A DNA stretch of 64,000 nt. It comes from Bigelowiella natans CCMP2755 (taxonomy: Eukaryota; Protista; Cercozoa). Under the pieces are notes generated by a model, which had not been told where the DNA came from, made no database searches, and saw only the letters and a program-made list of their open reading frames with translations. A program made the position numbers and the translations under genes. Below are positions 13,333 through 42,300 of this stretch, piece after piece (position 1 is the stretch's first letter; the number at the start of each line of letters is the position of its first letter). The DNA is taken from positions 1-64,000 of the forward strand of contig ADNK01002630.1 of assembly GCA_000320545.1 (NCBI GenBank). The letters are read 5' to 3'.

Positions 13333-16300
13333 ATGGCCAAGAAGAAGAAGAAGAAAAGGCGATCGGACGCCGGCCGCTATGGAATTGAGGAGCACCGGCC
13401 AGGCAGTAGCCACAGCCGTGGTGGTGGGGGACGCGCTGGGCAACGCAAAAATGGTCCGAGCGAGGCCAAGGCTTTCAGATTTACAGTTGAGCGGGTTGTA
13501 ATGGATTCCTCCGGAACTGACGGGGGGAACTCCATGCTGATGAGCCACGAGGCCTTCAAAGCTCACGGCTTTCGGTTTGGGGGAAAGCTCGTGATTCTGG
13601 CGATCGTCGGTGACGGTGACAGCGGCGGCTCGAAGAAGCATTTCGTAGGAACAGTGTGCTGCTGGCCCGCGACTTGCGTTCGACAGCGTGCCATTCGCTT
13701 ACAGCTCTCTTCCATCTGGAGCTCGTTGTTGCAAGAAGGAAGAGAGGTAGAGGTGCGCCAATTGGGTTCATTGGTATCGACCCCATTGTCGGTTCCTGAG
13801 ACCGTGGCCATTCACTTGGTAAATAGTAGTGCGAACGATCGAGAGGGGAAAAACAATCGGCTGCGTGGTGGTAGCGCTGTTGCCTTTTCGCCTCACAAGT
13901 CTCAGGATAATCCTTCATATTTTTCTACTACTACTACGCCTACTAATACTACTACTACTACTGCTACACACAAACCGTCCTCTTCCTCCTCCTTCGTCAT
14001 TTCAAAAGCGGTGCGTCAGTACCTCACAACTGCTTTCCGCGGGGAGGTCGTTGCGGAAGGTTGCACGTTGATGGCCAGCGTGGAAGGGCGGTCTAGATTC
14101 TTCCGCGTCGAGGAAATTTCGGCACGCTCTGTTCGCAATAGTACGCCCTCCAGCCCCAGGCAGACGACAAATGTTCCACCACGTCTCTTTAAGTTGGGCG
14201 GGGAAACGAGACTGGTGTTTCAGCGGGACGCGGCTAGAGATTCGTCACAGCCGCTTGCTGCTCTCCAGGGGAATAAAGAACGGAATAGCCTAGAGAAAGG
14301 GTCGGCTCCACCTATTGACAAAGGCAGCAGCGATGGTGATAGCTTGCACGGTGGTGATGGTGGCCAGATAGCGGCCACACGCTTTGTTGATATTGGTGGT
14401 TTGGGGAATGAGTTGAAGAGAATACGTCAAACAATCGAAGCTGGGTTAGGCTTGCTCCCCAAGCACATCTTCAACTCCTCCCAGGCGACCCCTTTGCGCC
14501 CGCCGAAAGGCCTTCTGCTATTCGGCCCTCCCGGCACGGGGAAAACCATGATTGCGAGGGCCGTGGCGAGTGAGTTTCGAGCTGCCTTTATCACGGTGAA
14601 TTCAGCAGAGATTCTCGGCCGATACGTCGGTGACGCGGAGGAGCGTCTTTCGCGAATATTCCAGGAAGCTGAGGAAAAGGCGCCCTCCATCATTTTCTTC
14701 GATGAAATCGACGCGATATGCCCCAGCAGGGATTCCTCGTCGGGGGTCAACGAGCATACGCAGCGGCTCACTGCGACGCTGCTTACGCTGCTAGACGGCG
14801 CTAATATGCGCGAGGCGCGAGTTGTTGTCATTGCAGCTACCAATAAGCCGAACGACCTGGATGAAGCTCTGCGGAGACCAGGACGGATGGACCGGGAAGT
14901 TGCGGTAGGAATCCCAAACGAGGAAGGGCGCTTTGAGATCTTGACGAAGATGCTGCGCAGCATGCCGCATCGGCTTTCTGAGAGAGAGATTCGGCACTGC
15001 TGCTCGATTTCTCACGGGTACGTGGGTGCTGATCTTCGCTCTCTATGCCAGGAGGCGGCCTTTGCAACGCTAAATCAACTAAGGGAAAATAGGAGGAGGA
15101 GGAGGGGGAGGATGAGAGTGAGGGTAAAGAAGGAAGAACTTAGCATGAATCATCTTCCTCACGCCGCTGGCAAAGCTGTTGGTAGTACTACCCAATCTTC
15201 TTCGTTACTGAAAGGGAAAGTTTCGAGCAATGCGGAGGGGGGAGAGGAAGACTCGAGCTGCAACGAGGTGAGATATTTCGAATGTAATGACAGAGAAGTG
15301 TATCATATACACGCACCTATGTTACCGTCAAAACAGAGCATCTTTTGCTTCTAGCATTTCTGTCTGCAAGCCTAACGATTGCCCTTGTTATGATGGGGCG
15401 CTTGGGCCCGGTCGATTTCGCAACACTTTCAAATTCTAACCTCTCTTTTCGTATATACTGCCGCAGCGTGGAGGCATCGTCAACGTGGAAAACGATGAAC
15501 TGAAAGAAGCAGGAGGGGGGGGGGCAGCGGAAGAAGAGTCAATAACATTCGGCGACTTTCAACGTGCGTTCGCAACCGTTCAACCATCGGCCATGCGCGA
15601 GGTGAGCGTGGAGGTGCCTAAGGTCAGTTGGGAGGACGTTGGCGGTCAATGGCAAGTGAAGCAGCGCCTCAAAGAAGCTGTGGAATGGCCGCTGCGATAT
15701 CCTCATAAGTTCAAGCGTATGGGAATCCGCCCGCCGCGCGGGGTGCTGCTCTATGGGCCTCCTGGCTGCAGCAAAACGCTGATGGCGAAGGCGCTCGCGC
15801 ACGAGAGCTCTCGCAACTTTCTCGCCGTGAAAGGCCCGGAGCTCTTCAGCATGTACGTCGGCGAGTCGGAGCGCGCGGTGAGAGACCTCTTCTCGAAGGC
15901 CCGGGCGGCATCTCCCTCCATCGTCTTCATGGACGAAGTGGACGCCCTGGCCGTGTCCCGGAGCGACGGCAGCGAGGGAAACAGAGCCCGCGACCGCGTT
16001 TTGGGACAGCTCCTCAGCGAGTTGGACGGGATGCAGCCGCTGGAGAACGTCGTGGTCATTGCGGCGACCAACCGGCCTGACCGGATAGACGCCGCGATGC
16101 TGAGGCCTGGGAGGATTGACCGCATGCTGTACGTGGGACTGCCCGATCGGAAGTCTCGAGAGGAGATAGCTGCGATTCAGTTGAAGGGCATGGCACACGA
16201 CAGCGGGAAAGTGAGTCCGTCATTGATCGCCGAGATGACAGAAGGATTCTCGGGCGCGGAGGTGTGCTCGTTGTGCAAGCAAGCAGCTGCCATAGCCCTC

Positions 16301-16429
16301 GAGGAGGACATCGACGCGGAGAAGGTTAGAGCGGAACATTTCGAGGCAGCGCGGAAAGAAAACCCCCCGCGGATCACCGAAGAGATGGTGCAGTGGTACA
16401 AAAACTTTCAAAGCGAATCGCTCGCGTGA
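13333..16429 (+). CDS. AFG2: Double-ring AAA+ ATPase, AFG2/Drg1/SPATA5 subfamily; join(13333..15267,15467..16429), ~965 aa
   Basis: D1: GPPGTGKT, IIFFDEID, AATN, ALRRPGRMDRE, HGYVGADL. D2: PSAMREV..VPKVSWEDVGG, GPPGCSKT (the CSKT variant typical of AFG2/SPATA5), VKGPELFSMYVGESE, MDEVD, LRPGRIDR. The GAG|gtgaga donor at 15267 and ccgcag| acceptor at 15467 join the two ORFs in phase 0. Confidence 0.92.
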
Positions 16430-17535: not shown

Positions 17536-20500
17536 CTACTGCAGATTGATTTTGAGCTCAGATTTGGCAGCCTCGATGACCTGCACAAGGTCGACAATGT
17601 AGCGGAGCGGCACTGCTTTGGGAAATCCCTTTTGGAACCAAGAGTAGGTCTTCAGCGCCTTGCCGTCCAGCTCCGCGTGCTCCATGAAGTCTGCCGCCGC
17701 CTTGGAGGGATCGTGGGTGCCCTCGACGAGAATCGTGGCGATGGTTGATTGCATCACTGCGAGCAGAGCTTCGAGGGTCGCATCGTCAGCAATCTCCTTG
17801 CAATCGAGAATGTCAGCTTTGATCCCCCGCGCGCGCTTCGCGTCGATGGGATGCTTGTAGGACATGTGCACGTCTTGGAACCTCGACTTGACGAGCACCG
17901 ACCGGAGCGTGGCCCAGAGCGAAGCCACGTGCTTCAGCCGCACCTGCTGCTCGATCGTCTTCGACTCCATTGCGCCGGCGGCGTCCTCCATCAGCAACGT
18001 CTCGCGCATGTACGTGGAGATGAGCACCTCGCCCAGATCGCCTGGGGAGGACACCTTGGACGACGATGACGATGCTGATGTCGTAGCGGTAGCTGTCACA
18101 AAGGCAATGACTGTTTCGAGGAGCTGCAGGCACTTTAGCGCCGCAGCGCCTGACCGAAGCTCGCCGAGAATGGAATCGCGCATGTCCGAGGTCAGCTCAT
18201 CCTGAGGAACGCGCCGAGCAATGGCCGCCACATCAATCGCGTCAGCATCGTCGGCGTACTGCACCGCTAGCGAGCTGGTCTCATGCGCATCAACAAGCGG
18301 CTTGCCGATGAAGTAGGTGTCCATCAGGTACTGCTGCGCGTTGTCAAAGTTGTACACAGAGGCTCCCTCCGCGGTGTGATCGACGCACTGCTTCATCACG
18401 AACGGGACGAACCGGCCCTCCAAATCGTACGAAATCGCCTGCGTCTGCGTGAGGAACCGAGGGCTGACAAACGACGCTGCCGCTGCGGCTGAAACCGCGC
18501 CCCCCTGCCCGGCAGACGAGGCGATGTGGAGAAGCTCCTGCCCCGTGTTCCGGAGGAAGACCGCGACGAGGGAGAGGAATTCGTTGTGTCTCTTCACAAG
18601 CTCCATAGTAATGGCCGCCGCACAGCGGCCTTCGTCGCGGTCTGACGCCAGCAGCAGCGTAATGGGAGACGCCTCTGAGACGGAGATGTCGCGGAACTTA
18701 TCAGGGATACGCTCGCCAACCTCCTCCCCCGCATCGGCAACGAAGTGCTTGATCCCTGGCCATGCAAGCTCCCAAGCCTTAGAGTAGCCCTGCAGCGCCT
18801 CGTAGCACGCACGCTTCTCTCCGCTGCCCTTCGCGTACGCTTCGATCGCGTCCTTGACGGTCAGCTTGCGCGCGGATTCCATATCCAAGGCGCGCGTGAG
18901 TCGCGGCACCAGCATCGTTTGGAACCGAAGAACATCGGGGAGGTAGCGAAGAGGGCGCAGCGACTCCTCGGCGGAGAGGAACCGAGAAAGCACCGGGAAC
19001 TTCGCTGAGTCTCCGATGTCCCCACGCCTCTTCGCGAGCGCGGCCGTCGCCTCCTCGTCGCGGCCAAGTTGAGCGGCGAAGTGGCCGAGCGAGAACGCGT
19101 GCCGGTACCTCCATAGCTCAGGGGCGAGCAGCTTGCTCTCCTCCGCCGGCAGCGCCTTGGTGTCTAGGCGCTCATTGAGGTCGTCGGTGAAGAGTGTGAG
19201 CTGTGGGTTAGGGCTGGGCTTTGAGGCATCTCGCAGCTGCTTCAGCAGGATATCAATCTCCACTTTGCGCTGGCTGACAATGCTTTGCGCAACACCGGTT
19301 ACGGAGTCGATGACGATCTGGCGATGTCGCTCGGTCCCGAGGACCCCCCAGTCTTTCATCCACCGGCGTTGTGCTTCCAGCAAAAACCGCCTCTTCGTGT
19401 CACCTGACTGCTTCATCTTCTCCTCTGCTACTTTGGCCAGCGCTACCTCCTCGTCAATGGCCTTGGGAGTCTTCGTGATAAACCTTTCGCCCTCCTTCCA
19501 TTGCGGCAATGCTTTGAGCTTCGCCATAGCCTCTCTAATAGTCTGTTTGTCGATGCTCCACCTGACGAACGAATGCAGCATGTACATAGTCGCGCCACCG
19601 AGTTCCCCCTTCTCGTTTTCCATTTTCTTGGGCGGCGGTATCGCATTCTTCACGAACTCGTGCGAGGCCAACACTGCCTGCAGGCCCTCCACGGTTTTCG
19701 GCCCGAGCTTTCCATCAACGTTTAACTTGGCTTCGGCGAATGCTTTGCCGGCGCCGGCGTGTCCAGGTTTGGGCAATCTATGGTTGACGAAAGTCTGCAT
19801 CGCTTTGACGTCGGCCTCCTCCATCTCCGCAACCGTGAGGTCGGGCCGGTACCCCGTCGGAGCGAGAAAACGATCGGCACCGAGCACGAACTTGAATGCC
19901 CTGCACGCGGCGCCGGTTATCTTCTTCGAATCCACGCCTTCGCTCGGTTTAGGGCAATGGTACACCGGCTTGACGATGCGATTTCCGGGAGCGTTCTTCC
20001 AGACGTCGCCGTCATCGTATTGCACGGAATACGTTCCGTCGCCGTTGTTGCGGACGATTTTGCCCATAAAGACGCCATGCTCGTTCCTAAATTGAGCGCC
20101 AACGCGTTCTCCAGCGGCAAACTTGGTCTTGATTCCTACCGGTTTTGGTTGATGTCAGTGCGAAGTCTGCTGCGGGGGGAATTGAGTAGCTTCGGAATAA
20201 AACGCAGTGGGAGAATGAATCCTCAAAATGCCAGGAAAAATGATAGACAATTATAAACCAAAACCACAAAACAACGCCATACGGCCGAGCTCACCGTGAA
20301 TGCAAAATTCAAGAGAAGAAATCGAAAGCAAGAAAATAAGCGACGAAGACATCCTCGTCATCACTCTTTGATTCTCACAACTGCTCGATATCAAATCACA
20401 AAATACGCCGCGGACGTCGATCATCTTCTATCGCCAACGCTGCTAGAATTGACCTCCCGTCGTGGCAGCCCACATCATTCAAAATCGTCTTTCAGTGAGG

Positions 20501-22320
20501 AAAAATAAAAAGGAAATCCAACCTGTCAAATCGACTTTACTGGCCTTCGCCTTGGCGTCAGCTATAACATCCGCAAGGGTCGGCATTCCTCGCGTTTTCT
20601 TCTTGCTTTTCTTTCCTTCCCTGGCCTCTTGAACCCCTCCTTGTTTTGCCTCGCCGCTCCCAGCGCTCTCGAAACCTCCAACACCTCCGCCAACGAAACT
20701 ATTACCAAATCCACTACCACTTTTATCACCACTGCTCGCAAATGGGTTAGATCCGCCGCCACTCCCAAATCCGCCACTGCTGCTGCTGCTGGAACCAAAC
20801 GGGAGCGAGGGGGCCTTAGCCATGTTCTCCTCTAGCATTGCCTTCAATATTTGATCCTCGTCAATCGGCTAATAAACAGTCGAGTCATCACCGGGCCAAC
20901 GTGAACAGGGAAGCAGGCAGCAGCAAAATCGCGAAGATTTCAACAACTCATAAAATGTTTGGAAACGCGCGTGCGCGCGCACACTTGCACCCCCTCACAT
21001 ACAGGGAGCGAGAGAGAGAGAGATAGGGAGAGAAAGAGAGAGAGAATTTGTGCATAGCACACAAACATGATGCAGAAACACGGCTGCTCGTCCTCGCAAG
21101 ACAAAAAAGAAAACCGACGCGGAAGGAAAGAACAAACCTGCTGCTTTAACGTGGCGGTTGTTGCCTTCAGTGCCTGGTTTGATATTATACATAACTCAGT
21201 GAGATTACATGCCATTCTAATCGAAACACGATCAATGGGAGCGAATATCGTTATTTGGTGGCTCTTGCGAGGAATAGGAGAGATTTTGTATTATGTAAGC
21301 AACCTCCTTCTCTTCTTCCTCCTCCTCCTCCTCCTCCTCTTCCTCCTCCTCAGCTTCCTCTTTCTCCTTCGGGGGAGGCCCCGTATCGGCATTCTCGAAG
21401 CACCAGTTGGCAGCTTGGCCGACGTCGCCATTGCAGGCCATCAGGCCGCGGACCGCGTGATGCTCCGCGATCCCCATCATCGTCAGCTGCGGAGCCATCG
21501 ACTTGTAGAGCTCTCTCTTGGCCTTCTCCTCGGCCCTCTTCTGCTTGGCCAACGCCCTCTGCCGCCTGGCCTCGAGACGCGCCCTGTGAAGCTGCTCGAG
21601 CTGTTGGCGGTACTTCTGCATTGCGCCGAGAGCGGCCTTTTCCTCCGGGGTCAGCCCTGCGTACGGATCGTTGTTATTCTGGAGGGAAGAAAGCTGCAGA
21701 TTCGAGGGGAGCTGTATCGTGCTCCCGGCCAATCGCGAGAGCACGCTTTGCGCGAGGAGCTCGGCGTCCTCGAGCGAGATCGCGAGACTCCTGGCCAGGT
21801 ACGAGAGGTCTGTTTCAATCAGGCCGAGCAGCTTTGCCTCGGGGTCAACAACCTGCGCGTTTGACGAGGAAAGCTCGCGGTTAGTAGGAAGTCGCTAGGA
21901 GGATCTAGTATCAATAGTCCGCTCGTCGATGACTGACGACTGCGGAGTGGTTTGTTTTGGCGACGGATTACCTTCTGCAATCCTACATCGCTCAAAATCT
22001 TGGTGGCAGCTGCCTTCCACGCCTTCGCATCCACGACCGCTGACGACGCGTAAAGAGTGGCGGAGCAGGACAACCTGTAGGGCACATCGATATTGCCCCG
22101 ACAATTAATGGGCTCTGTCAAGAATGATGATCTCTCGCAGCATCGGCGTGTGTCAAAGTGTTGTGTGATAAGAGAGGGCAGGGAAGAGGTCGGTCTACGA
22201 AGTGAATTCGAGCAATTTTGAGAATTCCCCACACCCTTTCGCTCCCTCTTTCTGCCGCTCTCCTCCTTATGCCGCACGCGAAGAAGCATATGCACGCGTA
22301 TATATTTACATATATCTACA

Positions 22321-22362
<42 letters not shown>

Positions 22363-24934: not shown

Positions 24935-25827
24935 ATATATATATCTATGTGTGCATGTATTTGTATTAGTGAGCGACGATGGTTGATGCTAGTAGTGGCA
25001 AGGTCGCAGCTTAGTCATAGTGATGAATGATGATCACAGCGACGACTACACCTATTTTGCGACTGTTCATACTCGAACGCCCTCCATTTTTATTTTGGAA
25101 TGCATTATACACACACACACACACACACACACGCACACCCACACGCACACCCACACGCAAACACAACTACACACACGTGGATAAACATATAATACAGTGC
25201 TTCAATAGCACGCTTTGCGCGGAAAAATAAGATCAAAGGCCGAGAAGAATCAAATGCACTAATCAGCCGCAGCTCTCTTCGTATTACCCTAGTTTCTTGC
25301 ACGTGTGCACCCGCAGGTCCTCCAGCCTCTGTCTAGTTATTGCTGATTTCTGCGTTACGACTCGCACGTGCCGAGGGTTCATCGTCTGCAGATTCACCTG
25401 CCTCATCCGTTGGATATCGAGCTTGTACTTGGCGGAATTAACTTGGAAATCAACCGAGGTTGCGCCTGTGATTCGCCCCTTCTCGATTTGCAAGTTGGTT
25501 TCAAATGGATATCGTTTCCATCCGGCGCCGTCCTTCCACTCCCAATGATTGACTTCCATGGTAACTCGGCCATTTTGCGCTGGGGTATTCTTCACCTCCC
25601 GGAAGATCAACTCGCCGTAGCTACGTGCCTTAAGGACCTGCAATGTCGCTCTAATCAATTTAGTTGTTTTGATTGACGCTTTTTACGTGGCGCTGTGCTT
25701 GTGCTCCAACATCGAGCGAGGAATACATAAAAATCGTATAATATAAATCGTATAATATATATATATATATATATATTACGATTCTACTCTCTATCTCTCT
25801 CACACACAGCCACCTATAATATATAAA

Positions 25828-25905
<78 letters not shown>

Positions 25906-28900
25906 ATATGGCGTTTTTTATTTATATTACCGATGATTTTGCTGTGTTTTTCTCCTGCTCGATTGCAAGTGCCGTTGCATTCTTAATCTCCCTCTCCACT
26001 GCTGCAATGACCCGGCCAAACCCTTCCTTGGCACGAGGGGCGAGGTCAGACACCAACGCGGCATGGATCGCCCGGAAAGTCGTCGAGTCTCTGAAAAGTT
26101 GAGAACAATTAGGAGGAAGAAGGACGAAGATAAGGGCGATTCAAACGGCAGCGAAGGCGATGTGGAATGCCAAGGAATCAAGCATGCCTGCCCATGTCGG
26201 GGCGACGACTCACCTGAATGGCACCAGCTCTGGCATCAAATCGTCGAAGGTAAACCGGACAAGGCCCTCGCTCTTTCTCGCCCACTCAACAAGCCACTTG
26301 GCGTCAGTGAGAGGGGCGGATCGAAGCGCAGTGTGAAGCAGCTTTTGCCCGGCGATCCGTGCGGTGGCGTCATCGTGGCCCTCTTCGGATGACAACTCGC
26401 TCGCGACGTTTTTCACGCATTTCAGCACGTACCTGTCGTAGGAGGCCGATACGCGAATACACACACACACACAAACAGAGAGATAGAGAAAGATAAAGAG
26501 AGAGTCCAATCACTTTCACAGAAACTCTATAGATCATTCAACGCAGAAGCACAATCACGACAACATCGACGAGCTAAGCAAATCGCACGTTCGCAGAGAA
26601 GGCGCCATGCCCGAGGCGCCGCATTGGCAGATGATCGAATCCAGCTGCTCCGATAGAGCGAGAAGGTCCGCAGGAATGCTTTCCTTATCAGCGCTGCCGA
26701 CATGCGCGACAAGAGCGGATGCGAAGAACTTGACAATGTGCCGCAGCTTCGCAATAGCCAAAAGCACACTATCCGGCGACTTAAACTGCTTCTTCACGTC
26801 CAGAGAGAGCGCTCCGGCGATTTCTTTCGCGGACGTCTTCGCCAACGCGAGGGCCCCGGAGAGCGAGGAGGGAGGGGGCGCGCCAGCGACCTTTTTGACG
26901 TCCTCCGCCCCGCCTCCTTCCGCGAGCAGGCTCTCGTGCATGGAAGCAAAGTTGACCGAGAACAGGTTTCCGATGGCCTTGGCCTTCTTCACGGAGCCCT
27001 GGAGGCACTTTAAGATCTGCGCGCGCGCGGTCTTCCGAAAGGCGGGGTTGGCCAGCTCGTGGAGGGCCGTCAGGAGGCACACCCGCGCGGCGTGGCTTGA
27101 GACGATATCGATGGAGGAGCGCTGAATGCGCTGCCCCGCCAGCGCCTTGAGGAAGTCGCGCAGGAGGTCCTTGTCCTTCATCATGACCCCGCCATCTCCC
27201 AAGCAAAGCTCGAAGATGTAGTACTCCATAAACCGCAGCGCCGAGTCTTTGAGCTGCTGCTCGGTCGCAACTGATTGCTGCCTCACCGTGAATTCCTGGT
27301 CCGGAACGAGCGTCTTGGAGCTCAGTTTTTCGCCGGTGACCGGCGAGATGTCGCTGTCCTTGAGGTAGTCCTCAATCGCCGTGCGCTCGTAAGTCTTCCC
27401 GTCTCCCTGAAGCACCACGGGCTCTTTGATTTCCTCCAGCGTAATCGGGCAGCGGAAATCGTACTCGACCAGTTTTCCCCGGAGCTTTGAGAACATGTCG
27501 ATGACCGCTTTGAGCGCCTTGGAGGTCCGCAATTCGCGGGTGGCCACGGTGGCCAGGGTCGCGAGCGTGTGCTTCGGCGCTACGCGCAACGGCACTGCCA
27601 CGTCGCGCAGGAACGTAAACATAAATGTGAGCTTTGTGAGCTTTTGGCGAACGGCGGCGGAGGCCTTCTGCGCCTGGTCTTTCTCCGCAGCTTCCAGCAT
27701 CGCCGAGGCCGTCGTCTGCGCAGCCTTGAACATTCGAATCCATTGCCCGTACTGCGCGATCTCCGTCCAGTTTTTCCGGGACTCCGCCAGGGTATCGAGG
27801 GCGATGCTCAGCACCTATATGCGGCGATAATGTGGATTAGTTAGAAAACAGCCGAGCTGCCCAGGCTCGAGACGTACACGTTATTATTACACTGCGGCGA
27901 AGGGATAAACGCGACTAAGAAAACGAATAATCCAACGGCAACAACCATCATCAAAAACATGCATCTAAAAGCCAACACACGCAGTATTGTTATGAAACAC
28001 ACCTCTAGGTCGAGAGCCGGGCCAGCCTGCTTTGCCTCGTCAATGTGCTTTAGAACGGCGGCCTTGCACAGAGGCACCGCGTTGATGAGCCCCATGTAAG
28101 AAACCACCATCGCCTCGCACCTCCAGAACAAAGCGTGGATCTCGGCGAACTTCGTCATGTTTTCGCCTCCGTTTTCCAGCCGCAATATCGTCCAGAGAAG
28201 CTGGGCTTGGTCTTCTCTACTGAGAGACTGGCTCGCGCGGCACCGCATGCATGCAAAGTCGTGCACATAGCGCCGAAGCAGCTTTTCCGGGATGCTGCCG
28301 TCCAGGCCTTGCTGGAACTGCATTCGCTTGACCTGGGCGTCGAGGGCTGCGACATCTTTCCCCTCGCCGGTCCGCGCCGTGGAGGCACGGAAGCTGTCAA
28401 TGGCGTTGTGCACAAAGAACGAGAATGGGAACTTCGACTCGAAGGAGGAGCCGAGCCCGTCCGAAGTTACTTCCACCTTTCCGCCCCGCGAGAGGGGCTG
28501 CTGCGCGCTAGAGGCAAATGCGTCCGCGAAGGATCGTCGGTAGAGGTAAAACCAGAGGCTCCGAACCTCTTCGTCGTTCAGAAGCTTGAGTCCATCGTTC
28601 CGGTCGGCGTGGGAGAGGAGTTGTGCAAACCCAGCCGCGAGAGTGTCGCGGATCTGCCGGTGCAATGCTGCCTGGAATGACCTCTCCACGGAGCCGCTCG
28701 TTGCAGCAGCCATCACATCGAGCTTCAGGTTGGACTGGGAGATTAGTCTCTTGACGGTATCCTCGAGCGCCGCTACCAGGTCGGTGTCATCTTGGAGAAG
28801 CTTCATCAGCATTCGTATTTGGCCTTGGACGTCAGTCACGGTGCGGGATTTTTGGTATGCCATGCGCCCCAGAGCGAGGCGGAAAGTGTTCAGAAGGGCG

Positions 28901-28964: not shown

Positions 28965-31900
28965 TGCACACGTGTGTATTCACACGTATGTGTGTGTGCG
29001 AGTTTGTGCGTGTATGTGTACAATATAATTACTCCATATTCATATTATATCGATTTATATGAATATCTGTGTCGCGCATCATGATCTCCTAAGCAGCATT
29101 GCTAGCAGATGTCAAAAAAAGCGCAAATATTTACAGTAGCAGCATTCACAACATCTTCTTCGTCACTGCAAGGGTTTTCGCCACGGCCATCATCACCATC
29201 GTTATTGCTCACACAGTACTTACGTCGAGTGTGCCGATGATTTCTTCCATGGAGAGGTTGGTACGAAGCATGGCTTGGAGATCTGGAAGACCGGTGTCAC
29301 CTGACGCATCGAGGTCATCAATGAAGGCCTGGCGCCATACGTTCGAGTAATCGAGCTGGAATTGTACGTCGCCTCGCTGGAGGTGAATTAAAACGATCAC
29401 ATGCACGCCGCGAGGGCTATCTGCAAGATCCTCCTCCCCAGCGTCTTGGTCTTTACTTTTCTTCTTATCTCCTGGCCCCATCATCATCGGCGTTTTTTTC
29501 TTCATCGAGGACGCATCGTCCTTCCCCATCATGCCGCTCATCTTTGACCGCCCGTCAGTCGCGCCCCCCCCTGCTTTACGAGCACCGGCAGACGGTTCGG
29601 CTGCAGTGGCAGGGCGTCTGCTCGCAATATCTCGGAATTTCTCCGAGGTTGCAAAGCGGTCGCGCTCCCTCTCCAGGATGTACTTTGAGTGCTCAATGCG
29701 ACGCAGGCTTGCCGCCTGAGGGTCACATTGGAGGAGGAAGACGTCGCCGTCCTTGCACTCCCCGAAAAACGAGGATACGGCGCTCCGAAGGTCGCGCTCG
29801 CTGGATAGCTCGTGGAGGTTGATGGTGGTGATGCTCGTCCACTTCGTCTTCGCAGCTACCAAATCTGCTGCGCTCTCCCCGAACGGCGTGAAGGTGAGAA
29901 GCTCTACACGCGAGCCAACCTTGGCACTGGCTGCTGTTTTGCTAGGCTTAGATGACTTTTCTTCCTTTTCATCGGTCTTTGTATCTGCGCCATTTTCTTC
30001 CGATTTCGGATTCGCTGGCTTCGTCGTTGCGTGAGCCGACTCCTCCTCATCTGCCCAGACGTCGATCATCCGCTGCGAGAAGGTGACGAGATCGGCATGC
30101 GACTGCTGCGAGAAGTACACCTCGCCGACATCGACGCCGAACTTCGACTTGAGCGCCTGCTGGCGCTCGCTGATATCCATCACGCGGCAAACGCTCTCCG
30201 GAGTCGCGGTCCACAACAGCCGCCGGATGCATTCATGCAGTGCGGCTGCCGACGAAGCAGACGCACCCTCAGCACCCGCAGCGGCGGAGGCAGCACTAGC
30301 TTCCGCAGATTTGGCGCTGAGAAAACTGGCTGGCAGGCTCTGAATCAATGATGCGAGCATGTCTATGTGATATCCGGTAAAGCAAGCCCGCAGTTCCGAC
30401 ACGCTGGCGCGCGAGTCCTCCCCACACGCGAAGATCCTTGCGAACAGCTGGAGGCTCTCCAGAAGCTGGCACTGCTCCGCATCGAGGAGGTCCTTCCTCT
30501 CCAGGACCTGCTTCTCGAAACGGTTGAGCAACGGCGGCGCGAGCCGGTTGTACGCGTCGATTTTCTCCACGACGACGATGATGCGGAACCGAGGGTCGAT
30601 CTCGCAGAGCCTATTGCTGGTCCCAAACGCGATGCGAACGTACAGCTTGTTCCCAAACTCGGTGTAGTGCTGATTCAGGAGGTCATAAAGCGACTCGTAC
30701 AGAGCTTCGCAGTGAACGAGGACGACCGTGCGCCCCTGCGCCATGCAGAGCTTCACCTGTTGGAGAGCCTGCATGATCTGCAAGTCGTTTTGGTCCGCGG
30801 GGAAATCGGAGCCGTATATCACCTCGGTCGTTGCGTGGTCCAGCAGCCGCGTGGCGCCGAAGAGAAGGCGAAGCGCGGCGCCATTCTTGGTGAGAAGCAT
30901 CAGCTGGCGGCTCTCCTTGGAGTTGATATTCGCCGAGACAAGCTGCACCACGCCCTTGCGCTTGGCATCTTTTATCGGCAGGCCGATGGCTCGAAAGAAG
31001 ACCTCAAGAACGTCCGCCATCGCCTCGGGCTTGCCGCCGAAGTTGCGTTGAACGGCGTCAACGAGCACGTCGCCGTCGAGGTTTCTTCCCTTCTGCTCCC
31101 GCAGCACGAGGTTGATGTGCTTCACGGTGGAATAGAACTCGCGGAGTCCCCAGAAGTCTCGCTGCTTCTGCGTGCGGTAGACTTCGTCGTAGGCCCGCGC
31201 AATCGAGCGGAGGAAGCCGTCGAGCTGCACGTTCTGCACCATGCCCTGCGCCGTTTTGGACAGGTCCTCGACGCCCGGGGCGGCGCGGAAGAGGTGCACG
31301 GCTCGGTTCATCTTCGCTGGGTCCAGCGCCCAGTTTGAGATCCCGACGAGGCTGTAGTCGCCACCCTCGTCGAGGACTTTGTGCAGCACTTTGAGGGGGA
31401 GGTGCGGCGACTGCTCCGCCAGCCCGACCTCGTCGAGCAGCACGATGACGATAGAGTTGGGGCTTTGCTGCTTGTACTTATGCGCCTTCATAAACGCCTG
31501 CTCGATGCCGGCCGAGGTAGACAGCGGCGAGCATTGGTAGGAGAACAAGGAGACCGACGGAAAATGACGGAAGAACTCGCTCTCGGAGGCCTCCCCGTTC
31601 ATGTTGGACATGATCAGCTTCATCGCCAGGCTCTTCGAAGTTCCCGGTTTCCCGACGACGAATATCGGGATTTGGTTCAAAATGGAGACCATGATCATGA
31701 AGAGGTTCTCCAGCAGCGCGTCGTTGAGCGCGATGCCGGGCCCGAGGTGCACGTGGCGCACGAACGACCGCATCACCTCATCGACGGTCTTGCCGAAGAC
31801 GCGCGCGTTGAGATCCAGCCACGTGCAGCGCGGACCGTACTTGGGCACGCGGCGCATGTTCCAAAAGCCAATGCTGACGTACCCAATCGGCTCCTGGAGC

Positions 31901-33304
31901 TTCAAGTAAACCTCCTGCAGCTTCGCGCCGTAGCCCTTGCGATCCCGCTGGCCGAGCCGGGCGTAGTAGCAATAGGCGAGGGACATGAGCATCGCGCGGC
32001 GTACGTGATCCCTGGTGCGCTCTTCGACGTTGAAGAAGTCCGCGGTGGTCCACGGCACCGCGGCCTTCGCGCCGACGCTCTTCGCGAAGAACTCTCCGAA
32101 CCAGCGGAAGATCTTTACGCACCGAGCCACGTCGCGGAGGGATACGACGGAGCGCTCGCCGTCATACGACGCCCGCACGTACTCTTGCGAGGCGCAGATG
32201 AGCTGGGCGAATACCTCGACGAAGTCGCCGAAAGTCCCGTCGCCTTGTTCCATCTCCTCCATCAGTTTTTTCATGTCTTCCTCGGATATCTGCTCTGCTC
32301 CGCCGCCGCCGCCCGCGCCCGCCTGCTTGTCCTTGGACGGGTCTTTCACGATTCCTTGCGACCCGATCTTGATCTGGCGGCTTTGGTCATAGCTCAACTT
32401 CTCGCCTTTGCCGCCGGTCATGATAGAGGAGGGATTGACCTTTGTGGGGGGGGGGGGGGGGGGGGAAAGAAATTTATGCAGAGGAAACAGAAAAGAGGTT
32501 TTATTATTCGACTGGCACCGATGTCACAGTCTAATCAAAACCGAGAAGTCTCCTCCAAATGCTTCCGCAAAACACATCATGATAGGCATAACAGCATTGC
32601 ACGATCAGACGCATCAGGAGTGGTCATTTCCGGGCATCTTGCCGGCTTCTCAGCCCGACGTATACGCACCTTGTTGTCCGTGTCGCCATCGTCGAAGCGA
32701 ACCGCGTAAGTTCCGTCGGCGTTCAGCGCGGAGATCCTCCCATAGTAAAAATTGCCTTTTTTGTTACGGTACTTTGCCTTGACCTTCTGCCCGATGCGGA
32801 AAGTGCCCCCGCTGGCCATGGTTTTTCGCATCATTGCGCGGTACTTGTCGAGGCGGTCATTCCCGTCTTTCCCGTCCGCGGGAGGGACAGCGGAGGCGTC
32901 CGCCCCCACGCCGCCGTCCGGCGTATGGCCGGCTCCTTTCTTCTCGTCGTCAGCCGCTGCGTGCTTTTGCTCGTGAAGGTAAATCCCAAGCTGCCGCTTC
33001 AGCATAGCGCGGATGTAGATCTCCTCGGTCTCGGGCGGGAGAGCGCCGAAGTCGTAGACGTGGTCTACCATTGACTCAGGAAGGGGGTGCACGCGGTACA
33101 CGAGGTTTTTGAGAGGATCGCGAATGCCTGTGCCGACGTTCTCCCCCGCGTCGCTTGTGTACTGGTCAAAGGCGAGGCCGTGCATGGCCTCTTGCTCTGC
33201 AGCGGCCTTGCTCTTGAGTCGGTACGGGTTGCACGCGCAAATAACCTGTACGTTCGTTGTTGCTTAAGTTTAGTCCGTGTCACAGTCACTTTTGAACGAT
33301 ACAG

Positions 33305-33341
<37 letters not shown>

Positions 33342-36300
33342 GCTTACACATTGTCCGGTGTGATACACGTGTATGTTGAAATCAAAGTTAAGAAAATAAT
33401 GTTATGGCGAGAATTCTTAGTAACGAGCGATTTTGTATCGTGTATAGATTGATGGGGGGACGGCGAACTCTCAAATGCACAACCCACAGGTCAAACAAAC
33501 GCCCCAACTCGCGCCAGTGGTTCCCTCGCTCTCGAGAGGGAGGCAACAACTCACCTTGAGATTTTCCGGAAGAAACTCGCCCTGCATCGAGCCGTCGCAG
33601 ACGATTTCCTTGAACAGGCCCATGCAGTTGCAGGTATTGACTTCGTCCAGGAAGACGACGATGCGCTCCTCCCTCGTCATGTAGCTCGCCTCTATGATCG
33701 CCCTCCGCATCCACTTGACCACGTCCTCCGCCTCCATCCCGCCGTGGATGTTGAGCGTGCGCAGGGGGAGGCGCAGAATGCCGCAGAGCTGCCGCACGAG
33801 CGAGCTCTTGCCGCAGCCCGTCTCCCCCATGATCATGATGGGAAGGCCGTTTTTGAGGCGGAGCTGGATGGCCAGCATCTTGAGCAGGTTGTCGATGGTG
33901 ACGACGTAGGTGGGGTCGGGCTTGTTCCGCCCCACCGAGTTGCGGAGCTGGTAGCCCTCGAGCTTGCGGAGGATGGCCATTCCCTCCTCGGAGGACATGT
34001 CGCGCCAGTCGCGGTCCAGGGACGTCTCCAATTTCCCGCCCAGCGACATCTGCTGCTTGAGGTTTTCGAGGAGGCCGCGCTCGATGAACTTGCGCACGAA
34101 GTTCTTGTTGAGCGCCAGGATGGAGAGGGCGTCTACTCCTCCGTGGCCTTCCACGCTTGGGAACCACAGGCAGATGGGGTGGTCCGTCTCGTCCCATTTG
34201 GTCATGTTCTCGAAGCGCGAGGCCATCAAATCTGGGTTACCGTTTTTGCTCTCAGCGTCGCCTTTCTCGTCCTCCGCGGCGGAGTCGGCGGGCCCTTTCA
34301 CCTTGCCCTTCTTCAGTTTTTTCCGCCCGACAGCCCCGTATTGCCATTCCCGGGGGACGGCGCGCATGGAGAAGTCTTTCGAGGTGGCAATTAGCATATC
34401 GGCCATTGCGTTGCGAAGGCCGTGGAGACCTTCCAAAAACTCGTAGACGTGCGGTTGCGTGAGCGAATAGCCGAACTCGGGGTCCATGCCGAAGAAGGCG
34501 TCCTTCATGTAACGCACGAAGTTGTTGAAGATCGAGAAGGACGGCGCGTCGTTGGGCTGAGTCTTGTTCTCGGTGAAGCTTCTCAGGAGCTCGAAGGCCT
34601 CAGCAGGCTCGATCGCGCCGCATGTGCGCGGGTTCCAAAGCTTGTCTTGCTCCCAAGTCGCGGATTTGATGAACTTCCGCTCTCGGAAGGCCTTCAGAAA
34701 GCTCGCGACGTAGTTTAAAGGTTCCATGGAGTCGTACTGATGCAGCTTAAGCTTCGTGCACTCTTGGTCGGTGAACGTGACTGTGCGCTGCTCGAAGGTC
34801 TCCACCCCTACCGCAAGCCGCCTTTCCGGTAGCAGCGCGCAGACTTGCAAGGCGTTGGCGGTCCTGTTCCCAGAGCTGTTTGGGATCTCCACGAAGAACG
34901 TGTCCTTCGTCCGGCGCGCATACACCGCGCATGTCGCCGGGTCCTTGAGCACGCCGACGATGAGGAGCTCGAAGAGGCACGTATTCGCGTCCGCGGGAAT
35001 CACATGGCCGACGTCGAGATGGATAGCGTTGCTTTCTCCTCGGGCATGTCCGAAGCGGGAGAGCCGCCGCACTAACGTGCCGGCCGTCGAGCTCTCGTGG
35101 TAAGGGACGCGGCGGTATTTTAGCCCCTTCTCCTCGCGCTGGCGGTCGGCCACGCTTCGTAGGATATAGCCGGTTTTGCCGCCGCCGTTAATGTTGGAGG
35201 AGATGGCCACCGTCTCGCCGTTGTGCTGCTTCGCTGCCTCGGCGACTGCAGTGCGCAGGGATTTCCGATCCAGCGCGCCGAGGGGAGTCGCGTGCGCAGA
35301 GAGGGAGTTGAGGATGACCTGCCGCGGTTTCCCCGAGACGAACAGCAGCGAGGCGGAATCGCGGGTCCGATAGCGGGCCAGCATCTCGCGGAGCCTCGCC
35401 AGCACCGAGACCTGCATTGCGTAGTCGAGCTTGTGCACGTCGGCGAGGCAAAACACGCACCGGCCTAGTCCGTGGGATTTGGCGGCCAGGAACCTGTACA
35501 GGATGAGCTCGACGTCCTCGAGGCTAGTGCCTTTCGTGCAGAACAGGATCTCTCCTGGCTCGGGCAGTCGCCCTCTGCGGACGTAAACTGAGAGCACGAG
35601 GTCCAGAACAGCGCTGGGAGACTCCGCACAGGACACCCACATCGGCAGGGTTTGCTTCTTCCCTGCTCCCACGCCCTGCATACGCTCGTCTTGCGAGAGA
35701 TGCAGCATATCCGTCTTGTTGCGGGAGTCTGCGCCTGGCATCGGAACTCTCCGGAACGTGACGGCTGATTTCGACGCCGAGGCGGCGCCTTCCTTCGCGT
35801 CCTTTGCCTTCTCCTCCTCGCTCGGGGCCATAATCCATCGGAGGATCTTCCCCACGGCCTCGAGCTGGTACCTATTCGTTTTCGTCCCCATTGCGTTGTC
35901 GCCGTCTTTGATCTCGGACGTGCGCGAGCGCAGCTCGCGACGCCAGACGGTGTGCATGGCGCGCACCCGCTCAACGTCAACGCGCGAAGAGAGCAGGTGC
36001 AGTAGAGCGCAGAACTCTTGGATGGCCTCGTACGATGACCGCCCGGTGCTGCCGGAGCGCGAGCGGACGCGCTTGCGCTCTTTCTTCAGGCCGAGGGACT
36101 CGATGAGCGCGGTCGTCTCGGCCGGGCGAGGCGCACCGCACATCACGCAGCGCTTTTGGAACGTCTTGTTTTTGAACCGACACGAGGAGCACCGCCAGTG
36201 ATCCATGATCGCCGCAGCCGCCTTCTTGTCGGCCTCCTGCTTTCGCTCGATCGACGATGGGGATCTCTCTAGATCGGGCGGGGCACTGCCATCGGCCGCG

Positions 36301-39300
36301 TTGTCGTCCCCCTTCCGTTGCGCTTTGTTTACACTTGAGGACTCATCGGACTCAAGACCTGGGGGCTTCTCCATTTCTTCAATTAGCCGCTTTTCCTCGA
36401 GCTCCTCCTCGATGTCGATTTTGGACCGCTTTCGCTCCCCCATGATGTTCTGAATCAAAACCAGAAGCTCGCGCATGCGGAAGTAGTTCAGGTAGTAGTA
36501 CTTCTCGCGCATCTCGCGAACGGTCTCCCTCCACGCTGCGAGCTCGGCGCAGAGTCGCGTGTACTCAGCCTTGAGGTTGCGTAGCCCTTCCTCGTCGGTG
36601 GTGAGGAAGATCCTCTTCGTGTACTGCTGGTTTTGGAAAGCGAAGTGGCCGGATTCGTACAAGGTCACAACTTGCGTTTTGATGTCCACAGCGACTCGCA
36701 GCTGCTCCAAGAACGCGCTCACCTTCGCGCTCATGTCGTGTTCCTTCTGCATCTTCTTCGGGATCTCGGTCATTATGACGCGAGACCTCAAATCCATCAG
36801 AAACTCCTCGCTCTTTGTTTCGATAGCCTTTTCCTCCGGCGCCCTCTTCTTGGCGGAGGCGTTGACAGCGCTGACCTTTTTGTCCCCCCCTCGCAGCTCC
36901 TCGTGCGGCTCGAGGGCGAGCACCGCATCGGGGTTGGGGTCCGACTTGAGCACGATGACGCCCGCGTTGAGGAAGTGGAGAATGTCCTTGCAGGCTCGGA
37001 CCCCTGCAGACTCGGTCTGCTTGGTGATGATGAGCTTGAAGGCCGCGAAGTTTTGCTGCACCGTAGTGAGGTGCGCGACTAGATCTCCGTTTTGGAGGTC
37101 CACCGCACGGAACGTCTCGAAGAACCCGGCCAGTGATGCGTATGGTGGCTTGTTGTACAGGAGCTGCAGCATGGCGGTTCGGACCGTCGCCAGACTCCCC
37201 GTCGCGTTGATCACATTGGCCTCTGCACCCGAGTCGAGGATGAAGGAGCGGTATTGGTTAAATTGACCTTGATGCTTCTGCATTAAGATCCACTTCACCA
37301 TGTCTTCGCTCGCAGGCTCTGCGAGTATGCGCAAGAACTCGCACTGCGCCGCGGTCAAATCGGAGCCGAGGTCCTTCTTGATCGGGGCGAGGAGAGACGA
37401 CAGCGAGTTCAGAGTGAGGGTGCTCCACTGCTTCTGCAGCGTGGCGGACAGCTCGAGCAGCTTCGCGTACACGTGGTCCTTCGACTCGTCTGTCTCAAAC
37501 AGAGACCCGAAATCATACTTGCGAAGTTTCAGGATGGCGGGCAGGGTGATCTTGAGTTCGGAGAGCACCGCAAAGTCCTCGAGCTGTACCAGCGCCTTCT
37601 CGTGCCAGCTGCTCTCGCCCTCCCCGCCCTTGCCTTCCGCGCCGCCGGCGCCGCTGCTTTTCTTGCTCTCCACGGCGTCTCCTTCCCCGCTCGCGCTCAA
37701 GACCATCAGCTCGGCGACGGAGTCTTCCATAGTGTTGACTTTGCCAAACGTTTCGATGAGAAGAGGCACGGACGCCTCCCCCCGTTTGACGCTGTCGAGA
37801 AGGGACTTCCAGCGCTTTTTGATGGCGGGAACGAGACGATCCATCACGCTTTTGTGAGAGAGCGGATGCTCTTTCATTAGGTTTTCATGGTCTAGTCGCG
37901 CGATCTGATCAGCAGCCGAACCGGCCCCCTTGCCGTCCTCCTTTTTGCCGTCGCCCCCCGCAGCAGCAGGTGCGACGAGGGGGAAGACAGAGGGCTTGGG
38001 GATGGTAGACGCGGACATTCCTATCGACGTGAGAATCACCTCCTTGCCTACCTCTCGCCACATATTCAGGAAAATGAGAGATCGATGCGCCGCGTAGAGC
38101 CAGGCGATGTTAGCGAGGTGCTCGCTCGGCATCATCTTTGGGAGCAGGGAGAGCACAGAATTCACGGCGAACTTGTTGTACCCCTCGTTGAGCTTTTTGA
38201 GCTCCTCTGGCAGCTTCCCGACGATAATCGGGACGCCGCAGTCGCAGAACTGGCGCAGGTACACGTTGATCTGGCCGAGCGCCGTGTCAAATTTCCTCAC
38301 GACTGCAAGCCATCCATTCACGACGTCCTCGGTTACTCCGCTGAGCCCTAGAAGCTCGAAGAGCTTGAGCGCATTGTCCTGATTTCGCTCGACGCTCATG
38401 AGATCTCCCAGATTCATGGTGCCTTTATCAGGCGCCAGCTGTTTGGCGGCGGACCCCATGACCGACTTCACGTGCGCTAGCACCTTGTTGAACGCTGTGT
38501 GACTCATCTTCGCGTCGCCGCTGCCATCGAGCCCGCGGGTGGTAAAGATTTCCAGCCAGAGCGCGGATGAATCTAAAATGCGGCCGAGGGAAGGCGTGCT
38601 GCCGCCCGCGCCGAGGGTGAGCGCATGGAAGAATTGGTGGCTGAGCGGCGAGTCTACTGGCAGCTTGTTTAGCGTCGCCACTGCAAATTGGATCTCATCT
38701 ACGTTCCGCCTCTCGGCCATTGCGCCGAGTAGCTTCGAGCCGACGTTTATCAACTCCCGCGCCAGGGCGGGGGCATACTTAAACGCGCCGCCATTCCGGA
38801 TGCCGAGGCCGCATAAGGTTCTAACGACATCTTTGGGAAAGCCCATCATCGGCCGACAGCGCTTCAGCTCAAACAGCAGCGTGTCGGAACTCGCGGCGTG
38901 GTAGACGGAGGCCTTGCAGATCTTGTCAATCAGCTCGCAGTTGCGACTGAGCGCGTCGAGCATCCTGCTGGCCCTCTCCTCGGGCTCGACGTCCTTGAGG
39001 ACGTCTTCGGTGAAGTAGAAGCTTCTCTTCACGCTCACCACCTTCTTCAGGAAGGGCTTGGCTTGATTCCCGTGCCGAAACCACTGGTACACCGCCTGCC
39101 CGAGCTTGGTGAATTTCTGTGCCAGAGCGTCGGCCTTCTTCCTCTTGGGGTGATCCAAAGGCAGCTTCTCCTCGCCGCGCCGGAGGCACGCTGGCATCTG
39201 CAGATCGGCGTATCGGCGAATCGACACTCCAAGAACATTTATCAGCGCGTCGCTCAGCTCGGCGTCATGCGCCTCGGCGCAGTGGTTCTCGAAGGCAGCC

Positions 39301-42300
39301 TGCGCGATTTCCGGGATTTGCAGCGCGGGGAACTCCCCGATAATCCCCGTGATCTCCTTGATCTCCGCGACGCCGAAGTCGCAGCGCCGCAACCACCCGA
39401 CGACTGTCTGGCTGAGCCCCTGGTTGATCATAGAGCGGACCTCGTGGCGAGCGAGCAGCACGCGCAAGCTTTCAGTCGTTGGCGCGAACTCAACGAGGGT
39501 GTGGAGATAAGCCATGCCGATGCTCAGCAGCGCCTCGCCGGGTGTAATCCCCGTGTCCTCGGCGTCCGCCGGCCTCGCGGCGCGCTCCGCGCGCTCCTGC
39601 GCGAGGAATTGCGCGGCCGTCTGGAGGGTCTTGGCTGCCATCTGCACGATGGACTTCGTTTCCGCGGCGAAGGCCGTAGCGAGCTCCTGCATTCTCTTCC
39701 TCTTCTTTGTGCTGACCGCCTGGGGAAGGGGTTTGAGGCGGTCGGCGTGGGCGATTTCCTCTCCGTGCGCCCCTAGCGCGACCTTGTAAGTGCCGTCGCT
39801 GAGGACGTTGAGAACCAGCCCTTGGTAGTAGTACCTGCTGGTGAGGCTGCGGCACTTGAGGCTGTCTCCCCGCTTGAACCCTCGTTTACACCCCGCGTTC
39901 GCGGGGAAGGGGAGCTTCGGGAGCTTGCTGAAACGCCTCAGCACCGGCGCAATCTTGATCCAGCGGAAGTCGTTGACGTTGAGAAACCGCGCGGCGGCCT
40001 CCTGCAGCCCGGTCACTGACTTCTGGTACTGGTTTCCAAGCAGACCGGGTAGATCAAGAGCCCGCGCTAGATTCACGTCGAGGTTTTCGAGGACAAAAGC
40101 ACACCACGGCTCGGGCTCGAGGCGGAGGGCGACGTCCTCGTGGTAGACGTCCGTCCCCTTCCAGTGCGACACTTCCTTGGTTGAGTCCGTGCTCAGACCC
40201 AACGCACCCGGGATAACGAGGAGCGCCATCATGGCTCCGACGGGGGCGGGCTTGTCACCGATAAACTCCTTCAGCTTCTGCAGGCCGCTTGCTGTCAGCG
40301 TATCGCCGACTCCTCGCGAGACTTCCATATCGCCGAAGATTGCGCAGACGCGCGCCACGAAGGTTTTCGGCGTGACTAGCCCTCGGAGCACACCCTCGAA
40401 ATCGCCGATGATGCCGGCCTCGAGCGCCTCGCGCTGGGAGAGCGACTTGAAACCGTCGTAGAATTTCTTGTACTTTTTGTTCTTCTTGTTCGGGCGGAAG
40501 ATGGCGAAAAACTCCGCCTTCATCTTCTTCTCACGCCGCGGGTGGCCGCCCTCCTCCCACACCGCCTCACCTTGCGCCATAACGCACCGCCACTCGAAGA
40601 TGCCGGTTTTGCAGTTCTCGGTCTTTTTGAAGGGCAAGTCGATCGTCCCATGGTATTTCTTTGGATTGGCCCCGTCTTGCTGCAGTTTAAACTAATACAG
40701 ATAAGAGCAGCGACGGAGAGCACGGGGTGAGGAGGACCAGAGAACGGGGGTGCAGCATAACGCAAATTTGAGAATATATAATGTTAAAGGCCGAGAGTTT
40801 TTGGGAGTCTTTGTGAAAGACGTGAGAATAGAGGGCGGGGGAAACATTGTGTACTTTCTGCATAATCATCAGCATCGTCATCATCATTGCTGCATGCCGA
40901 CTTCTTTATTATCCTCACAAGCAAACTAACACTGGGAAATACTACTTCTAATACATAGACTCTCTTCTTCATCGTCGGTGAGCAAGACGATTTGCGACAT
41001 TTGCTAACATGCATATAATAAATAACAGTAACCAAAGGCAGCAGCCGGCAAGCTTAGAAGGACGGGACGATAACGACGAAAAAAGAGGAAAAAACCTTCA
41101 ATTCCTTCATCTCCCCCATCGTCGCTGGGGTTCCCTGTACATAAAGTGCACAGTCCTTGTGCTCCTGCATCCAGCTCGCGTCAATGATTACATGAAACGT
41201 CGCTTGATTCTTCGCCTCGGGGTCATTCGGCGTGTACGGCTTGAATTTCTCCACGTACTTTCCCACGTTCTCCTGGCGGACGTGCTGGCCTTTCAAGCCG
41301 TATATGGAGAAGCTTTCCCCCACGAGGCGCTTCCAGACGTAAGACCGGTACTCGGATTCGAGGTCTTGGACTGAACGGGTTTCATCGTTGGCATGATAAT
41401 TGTGAAGAAGGACCAAAAGAATAAGAAGAAGAAGAAGTGGTGGTAGGATGAGCAGGATGATGATGAAGGATAAAAAGAACAGCAAGAAGAAGAAGTAGTA
41501 GGATGAGCAGGATGATGATGATGATAATGCTACTGGCGGTATTGGTAGTACTCCCCTCATCAACCCCCCCCCCCAAAATACACCCTCTCTCCTTGGCTCT
41601 GGACAACAATACCGTAGTGCTGCCCGTCGTTTGGGTCAAATCGGTCTACTAGGCACTTTTTCCATTCGAAAGGTTCATCTGAGTAACAATAACACATATT
41701 CAATAATATCAACTCGTGATCGATCAATTGACGATAAGCGAGGCCGCACATAGCACAGCACATTCAACCCAGCGCAGCAGTAAACATCTTGAACATCCCC
41801 ATTACACCATACAAGTCGCTGTCATCATTTGGGGAAAACAATTGAGTACTCGTAATACTACTGCTACGTACGTACGTACCGCCGTCGCGCGACTCAAATA
41901 CAAGAGAGATCTCTTTCTTGTTAAGGAATTCGGGGTTGGTCTCGTCATATCCCCATTCACCCTCTGCATGTGCGTCAGGGTTTGGATCTGCCTTCAGCAC
42001 CTTCGCGTCGCCAAGGTCCATCTTGGGGCGAGCGATAATAGTTTCCCCCCACTGCCGGTTCGGATGAATAGTAGCGGGTATGAGAGGAGGAAGGGGGTGG
42101 GGCAAAGATATCGCATATGTGAGAGCTAAGCTAAAAGTCGTCACGCCAATGCTAGATTTATCTTCTCTGACTACTTTTTTTTTCTATAGGTTGACCATCA
42201 AGGAAACATGGCCACACAAAAAGCAGGAAAATCATGTGTGGAGTGAATCTTAGTTTTATTATCACCGTGTCGCCGCTCCCTCCTCGGAATTTTGAATGCA

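Follow-up and report, generated by a model that had tools for sequence, protein, structure and literature searches.

The last exon of an RNF213-like ubiquitin ligase gene in the alga Bigelowiella natans (contig ADNK01002630.1, minus strand) appears to encode a strongly diverged PGBD-like module coupled to a Tudor-like domain. The two would form a single native two-domain cassette, a paralogous copy of which lies in the C-terminal part of a USP-type deubiquitinase, and on balance we favour a shared docking role of this cassette for the ligase and the deubiquitinase. Cell-wall enzymes of bacteria and phages carry the PGBD-like three-helix domain PG_binding_1 (PF01471), and an earlier note on this DNA had read a tandem motif in the exon as a module of this kind, possibly acquired horizontally, that could dock the ligase on the bacterial cell wall. 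Coordinates refer to the window, the whole stretch of 64,000 nucleotides that was analysed, and the features of the ligase gene all lie on its minus strand.

The frame that holds the module is open for 872 codons (20154-17539, minus strand) and ends at a stop codon at 17536-17538. RNA contigs X1 and X12, together with the marine metatranscriptome contig X15, join position 20134 directly to 20522 and thereby skip an intron of 387 bases (20135..20521) that has GT..AG ends and keeps the frame. Since this joint is seen in RNA and the exons on either side are both open in one shared frame, 17536..20134 is the in-frame last exon of the gene, holding the Tudor-like domain, the PGBD-like module, a helical region and the C-terminal domain (CTD). 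The listed open reading frame (843 aa from an ATG at 20067) misses the first strands of the Tudor-like domain, which begins at approximately 20134. In the C-terminal half of the last-exon frame, 17833..19005 is homologous to the RNF213 CTD: phmmer matched it to PDB chains of human and mouse RNF213 with E 3e-8, and in these solved structures the match aligns to human residues 4803-5077. The earlier note had placed the motif in the last exon, sharing its frame with the RNF213 CTD, and the splice joint, the open frame and the CTD match bear this out.

Further upstream, the X1 and X12 contigs skip six more introns (20869-21137, 21851-21969, 22073-22417, 22654-22894, 23986-24238 and 24423-24600), some of whose joints are also present in X15; all skipped stretches of the gene have GT..AG ends on the minus strand. 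Among raw RNA reads, run X24 contributed eight on the stretch. A glycine/FG-rich exon (20522..20868) is spliced to the last exon in the RNA contigs, with a matching order in an ortholog transcript (L007). Domain searches, run exon by exon on single exons, located a UBA domain at 21385..21495 (Pfam UBA_7, 31.4 bits), a WWE domain at 25362..25547 (46.1 bits) and, at 27290..27457, a U-box (41.6 bits) standing where the RING of the E3 module would be expected. In the large upstream exons (29212..40637), Pfam finds AAA modules of the dynein type (AAA_5, AAA_7), a zinc finger of the RanBP2 type (Zn_ribbon_RanBP) and another Tudor-like domain (Tudor_5). The dynein-like AAA+ core is represented by AAA_5 (30.5 bits) and AAA_7 matches in two large exons, while the second Tudor-like domain (Tudor_5) occupies 32580-33263. 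The WWE, UBA, second Tudor-like and RanBP2-type zinc-finger domains (33474-40637 exon) are small reader modules accreted around the AAA/U-box core.

Two observations concern the surroundings of these exons. In the RNA contigs, a 38-base piece (21138-21175) runs into a glutamate-rich repeat (approx. 21175-21366) and the junction falls within the repeat; an extra small intron or a micro-exon at 21138-21366 is likely. On the plus strand of the window lie two open reading frames at 13333-16429, each with an AAA lid and a classic AAA domain, the latter scoring 146 and 148 bits; they are probably one two-AAA (Cdc48/NVL-like) gene that runs convergently towards the ligase gene's 3′ end.

Within the last exon, the Tudor-like domain (19954..20134) gives weak Pfam matches (PTM_DIR17_Tudor 21.6 bits, 53-BP1_Tudor 19.2 bits) and matched hundreds of Tudor-repeat proteins in the representative search. 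Four helix units follow. U1 (ITGAACRAFKFVL, 19882..19920) is predicted to be helical and aligns to helix 1 of the PG_binding_1 domain of the deubiquitinase and to the ortholog; U2 (TGYRPDLTVAEMEEADVKAMQTFVNHR, 19777..19857) aligns with the relatives and is predicted as a long helix, in an uncertain register; U3 (VDGKLGPKTVEGLQAVL, 19669..19719) contains the D-G-x-x-G-x-x-T motif and is picked out by Pfam PG_binding_1/PG_binding_3, by hhalign and by a pattern match. U4 (EKGELGGATMYMLHSFVRW, 19558..19614) is the second motif of the earlier note; five of its residues (E, G, L, G, T) do not vary in a three-way alignment of the ligase with the ortholog (P0015) and the deubiquitinase (P0152). Translated on the minus strand, 19560-19812 contains DVKAMQTFVNHRLPKPGHAGAGKAFAEAKLNVDGKLGPKTVEGLQAVLASHEFVKNAIPPPKKMENEKGELGGATMYMLHSFVR, as had been quoted, and U3 and U4 share one minus-strand frame, with the helix-start motif present as DGKLGPKT at 19690-19713 and GELGGAT at 19588-19608. 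A 15-residue PGBD pattern (G-x-hydrophobic-[GDNSTE]-x-x-[TS]-hydrophobic-x-x-hydrophobic-[QKERH]-x-x-hydrophobic) has exactly two matches in the 128,000 codon positions of the window's six frames (19669-19713 and 19564-19608) and two in 191,017 residues of unrelated hit proteins, one of these being the ortholog's own unit; as the pattern was composed after the motif was known, such counts are illustrative. The tandem motif described at 19560-19812 is therefore present as stated, with both units in one frame. Two further helix units lie upstream of it, reaching approximately 19932 directly after the Tudor-like domain, so the boundaries of the module widen from 19560-19812 to about 19558-19932.

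Direct comparison did not place the module in the PGBD family. Against a gathering cut-off of 23 bits for PG_binding_1, the module scores 13.8-14.7 bits (E 0.036-0.07), with only model positions 41-55 aligned (15 residues, the VDGKLGPKTVEGLQ unit); PG_binding_3, with a cut-off of 24.6 bits, scores 12.8-15 bits and covers just the same unit. Both scores are under their cut-offs, and the HMM search that had been proposed as a check of the PG_binding_1 assignment (14 bits against 23) does not confirm it directly. These two are nonetheless the sole Pfam families listed for the module piece (E 0.03-0.14). A six-frame scan of the whole genome (91 Mb) with PF01471 did not recover the ligase locus at E<=1, and neither PHROGs nor NCBIfam matched the ligase segment. 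Sequence and profile searches of the PDB with the module returned nothing; this search is insensitive, since a profile of the bona fide paralog likewise retrieves no PGBD there. Profile-profile comparison (hhalign) of the module with the native PGBD modules gave P 6e-5, over just 24-30 aligned columns, corresponding to one unit. For the three-helix fold expected from the earlier note, AlphaFold2 predicts helices at U1, U2, U3 and U4, but with pLDDT values of 42.4 (single sequence) and 44.2 (4-row alignment) their packing is not credible. Judged by the refuting condition of the earlier note, which asks for a profile or structural match, the module does not pass on direct evidence. Word-index protein searches with exon residues 1-260, with residues 205-420 of P0015 and with the deubiquitinase cassette yielded no further relatives, so the module alignment stayed at 3-4 rows; profile searches of the alga's own genome returned known loci only, and a metagenome scan one CTD fragment. 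The feature neighbours of the ligase segment in the ESM-Atlas are PG_binding_1/3 clusters (0.89), a kind of score that the tool itself rates as a lead only.

These results leave some room for a chance or convergent motif, i.e. a lineage-specific helical linker of amphipathic G-x-L-G-x-x-T units that has neither common descent nor a common fold with the PGBD. A Pfam score that is sub-threshold and confined to 15 residues would fit such a linker, as would the single-unit hhalign match, the want of a confident fold and an ortholog segment that has no Pfam PGBD match. It is harder to reconcile with the only two pattern matches in the window's six frames being adjacent and in frame with one another, and with the evidence from a second gene of the same genome.

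The PF01471 genome scan identified two other native loci, on contigs C280 and C1529. At the first (G000:C280; L004:4824-9833, minus strand), a Tudor-like domain closely resembling that of the ligase stands ahead of the PGBD. A spliced MMETSP transcript of this gene (P0152, 2655 aa), which agrees with the genomic ORF at 99% identity, encodes a giant USP-type deubiquitinase (Pfam UCH, 142.8 bits) with a Tudor and four-unit PGBD-like cassette in its C-terminal part, at residues approximately 2325-2500. The segment 2385-2520 of P0152 scores 28.1 bits with PG_binding_1 over model positions 5-57, above the 23-bit cut-off. The ligase exon aligns with P0152 at E 2e-15, colinearly through Tudor, U1, U2, U3, the linker and U4, indicating that a ligase and a deubiquitinase of one genome share one cassette. 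When the Tudor part is left out, BLASTP still aligns the ligase with P0152 over U3-U4 (E 2e-5), and P0015 with P0152 over 129 residues (E 9e-7); none of 3000 composition-preserving shuffles reached the score in either comparison. After removal of U3, P0015 still scores above all 3000 shuffles, while the ligase score is reached by 38 of the 3000 and becomes marginal, a point in favour of the linker. Taken together, however, the shuffle tests favour real similarity, and the ligase module is significantly similar to a sequence that itself passes the PG_binding_1 cut-off. The colinear match of Tudor and U1-U4 to a cassette that passes over the full Pfam model, together with the position of two diverged orthologs among PGBD clusters in feature space, leads us to consider the linker unlikely, though it keeps some weight. 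The PGBD-like assignment in the earlier note thus survives through homology to the paralogous cassette and language-model neighbours rather than through its own profile score. From these comparisons, U1-U3 (19669-19932) are probably genuinely PGBD-like and strongly diverged, followed by a conserved fourth unit (19558-19614).

The third locus (G000:C1529; L001:688-2181, plus strand) encodes a PPR-like protein with long homopolymer runs, in which PG_binding_1 scores 25.5-29.1 bits and the domain has PHROG endolysin matches at E 4e-5. This protein is another native, intracellular-type setting for PG_binding_1.

The cassette is also found outside this genome. Ortholog P0015 is 35% identical to the ligase over 400 residues (E 8e-68) and keeps four helix units in corresponding places (FSIEDVKAVQYLV, EGKLNAGTVTGFERLI, SDNELDSASIENLQKML and EKGVLGPLTLHLFRKW); its segment, 31% identical to ours, has PG_binding_1/3 clusters as ESM-Atlas neighbours (0.90, 20/30 matches). 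In a related organism, the transcript-like contig L007 contains a single ORF of 1985 residues with, in this order, two UBA domains, an FG-rich part, Tudor, PGBD-like and CTD regions. A second relative, P0053, has the helical region and CTD only, with no U4 in the expected place, and appears to be without the PGBD-like module. P0015, with its full cassette, and P0053 were the useful relatives from an exhaustive representative search that was dominated by Tudor-repeat proteins. Its hits (P0001-P0150) include hundreds of proteins, as long as 7637 aa, in which the Tudor-like repeats number up to 35; one of these proteins (P0009) also has PUB domains, and such Tudor-array proteins are a large, little-described class. 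Separately, the marine metatranscriptome contig X15 is 95-99% alike to 19621-19847, with eight differences, among which A96T, V94L and one synonymous change are listed, partly in U3 and partly ahead of it; the PGBD-like module is expressed by a close relative in the sea.

We next consider the origin of the module, which the earlier note saw as grafted into the ligase by horizontal acquisition. Its composition (GC 0.585, GC3 0.732) is close to that of the rest of the last exon (0.603 and 0.757), it is kept in the 35%-identical ortholog, and paralogous modules occur in two other native genes; this part of the claim finds no support. The search for close bacterial or phage relatives that had been suggested alongside it was likewise unproductive. 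Of the nine matches (E<=10) in a tblastn search of 2.3 Gb of phage genomes, eight lie in related endolysins of Lactococcus phages, within the PGBD region. The best of them is the Lactococcus phage P092 endolysin (Amidase_2 + SH3_3 + PG_binding_1), which resembles the module over three helix units (33% identity over 87 residues, pairwise E 1e-7); it differs in that the match has a database E of 0.9 and is absent from ortholog P0015, with no sign of recent common descent. A plasmid tblastn search produced noise only, and a scan of 185,579 bacterial and archaeal species genomes with the PGBD pattern revealed no close relative. Not significant at database level, not common to the ortholog and accompanied only by noise from plasmids, the kinship with phage endolysins was given little weight. 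There is no sign of recent transfer, horizontal acquisition is not supported by these comparisons, and, judged by composition and distribution, the cassette is native and old.

This history bears on the proposal that the ligase owes a hold on the bacterial cell wall, and with it targets beyond LPS, to a peptidoglycan-binding domain of bacterial or phage origin. The D-G-x-x-G-x-x-T motif is present, the best phage matches do fall in an endolysin PGBD, mammalian RNF213 acts on cytosolic bacteria, and the source alga is marine and possibly bacterivorous. Against this stand the native codon composition, the lack of a close relative in phages (best E 0.9), plasmids and species genomes (by the pattern method), the position of the module within a spliced exon flanked by eukaryotic domains, its presence in both the ortholog and the deubiquitinase paralog, and the cytosolic type of the ligase. 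Moreover, annotations place PF01471-type domains in the majority of primate matrix metalloproteinases and also in plant enzymes of this class, where peptidoglycan binding has not been shown, so cell-wall docking does not follow from the fold; the paper on the plant enzymes leaves it to be determined whether bacterial patterns are bound (PMC9085222, PMC2715019). We therefore regard an acquired cell-wall binder as improbable. A native cassette that recognizes cell wall or muropeptides, and so brings ligase and USP deubiquitinase to one bacterial surface in a bacterivorous alga, seems to us similarly improbable; were it true, a lineage remote from animals would possess a writer-eraser pair for the ubiquitin coat of bacteria, and the handle of this pair would be peptidoglycan instead of LPS. 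Peptidoglycan as the cassette's ligand is possible and not favoured. The cassette gives no support for bacterial gene transfer and none yet for peptidoglycan recognition.

The reading we prefer is a native docking cassette. On this reading, 19558-19932 would encode a strongly diverged helical module of the PG_binding_1 type, with three helix units and a conserved G-x-L-G-x-x-T fourth, set between the Tudor-like domain and the helical CTD in the last exon of an AAA+/U-box ligase. The occurrence of the same Tudor and PGBD-like pair on both a ligase and a deubiquitinase suggests that it may bring the two enzymes to one partner or structure, and the PGBD-like part could present a small surface of three helices to which a protein or a glycopeptide binds. 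A different, intramolecular role is conceivable, in which the bundle is a regulatory latch that packs on the E3/CTD region of the ligase and on the USP domain of the paralog. In matrix metalloproteinases the PF01471-type pro-domain packs on the catalytic domain in this manner, and the module of the ligase does sit between the E3 region and the CTD. In those enzymes the domain lies in the pro-peptide (PMC2715019), near the N-terminus (PMC9085222). The module has no cysteine-switch-like element, however, and no structural model speaks for such packing; that one cassette accompanies two catalytic domains with no relation to each other points to an external partner rather than a latch, which on this analogy we judge very improbable. 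If the docking reading is correct, ubiquitin enzymes that act inside a protist cell have taken on a domain family known from cell-wall enzymes and from the pro-peptides of metalloproteinases, fused to a Tudor-like reader, and the shared cassette yields a concrete hypothesis of a common target for ligase and deubiquitinase.

Comparison with known systems helps to place the cassette. The ligase module resembles PG_binding_1 in its D-G-x-hydrophobic-G-x-x-T helix start followed by hydrophobic-x-x-L-Q, in the repetition of helix units at similar spacing and in its homology to a paralog above the family cut-off. It departs from the family in its lower score and longer loops, in a conserved fourth unit that falls outside the 57-position model, and in its setting, fused to a Tudor-like domain in a cytosolic eukaryotic ubiquitin ligase. 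With the PF01471-type domains of metalloproteinases it has in common a eukaryotic setting in which peptidoglycan binding is not an established function (PMC9085222, PMC2715019). Those domains belong to secreted pro-enzymes and form an N-terminal pro-peptide, whereas the module of the ligase is internal, paired with a Tudor-like domain and part of a giant intracellular protein. In the RNF213 literature that was searched, no RNF213-like protein is reported to have a peptidoglycan-binding domain, and no counterpart of the Tudor and PGBD-like cassette was found in the aligned region of human or mouse RNF213. The algal ligase shares with mammalian RNF213 (mysterin) a dynein-like AAA core, a homologous C-terminal domain and giant size, while differing from it in the U-box that replaces the RING and in its additional WWE, UBA, RanBP2 zinc-finger, Tudor-like and PGBD-like modules. 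Its Tudor and PGBD-like cassette adds a new architecture to a known domain family, and the make-up of the ligase as a whole shows the modularity of RNF213-like ligases outside animals.
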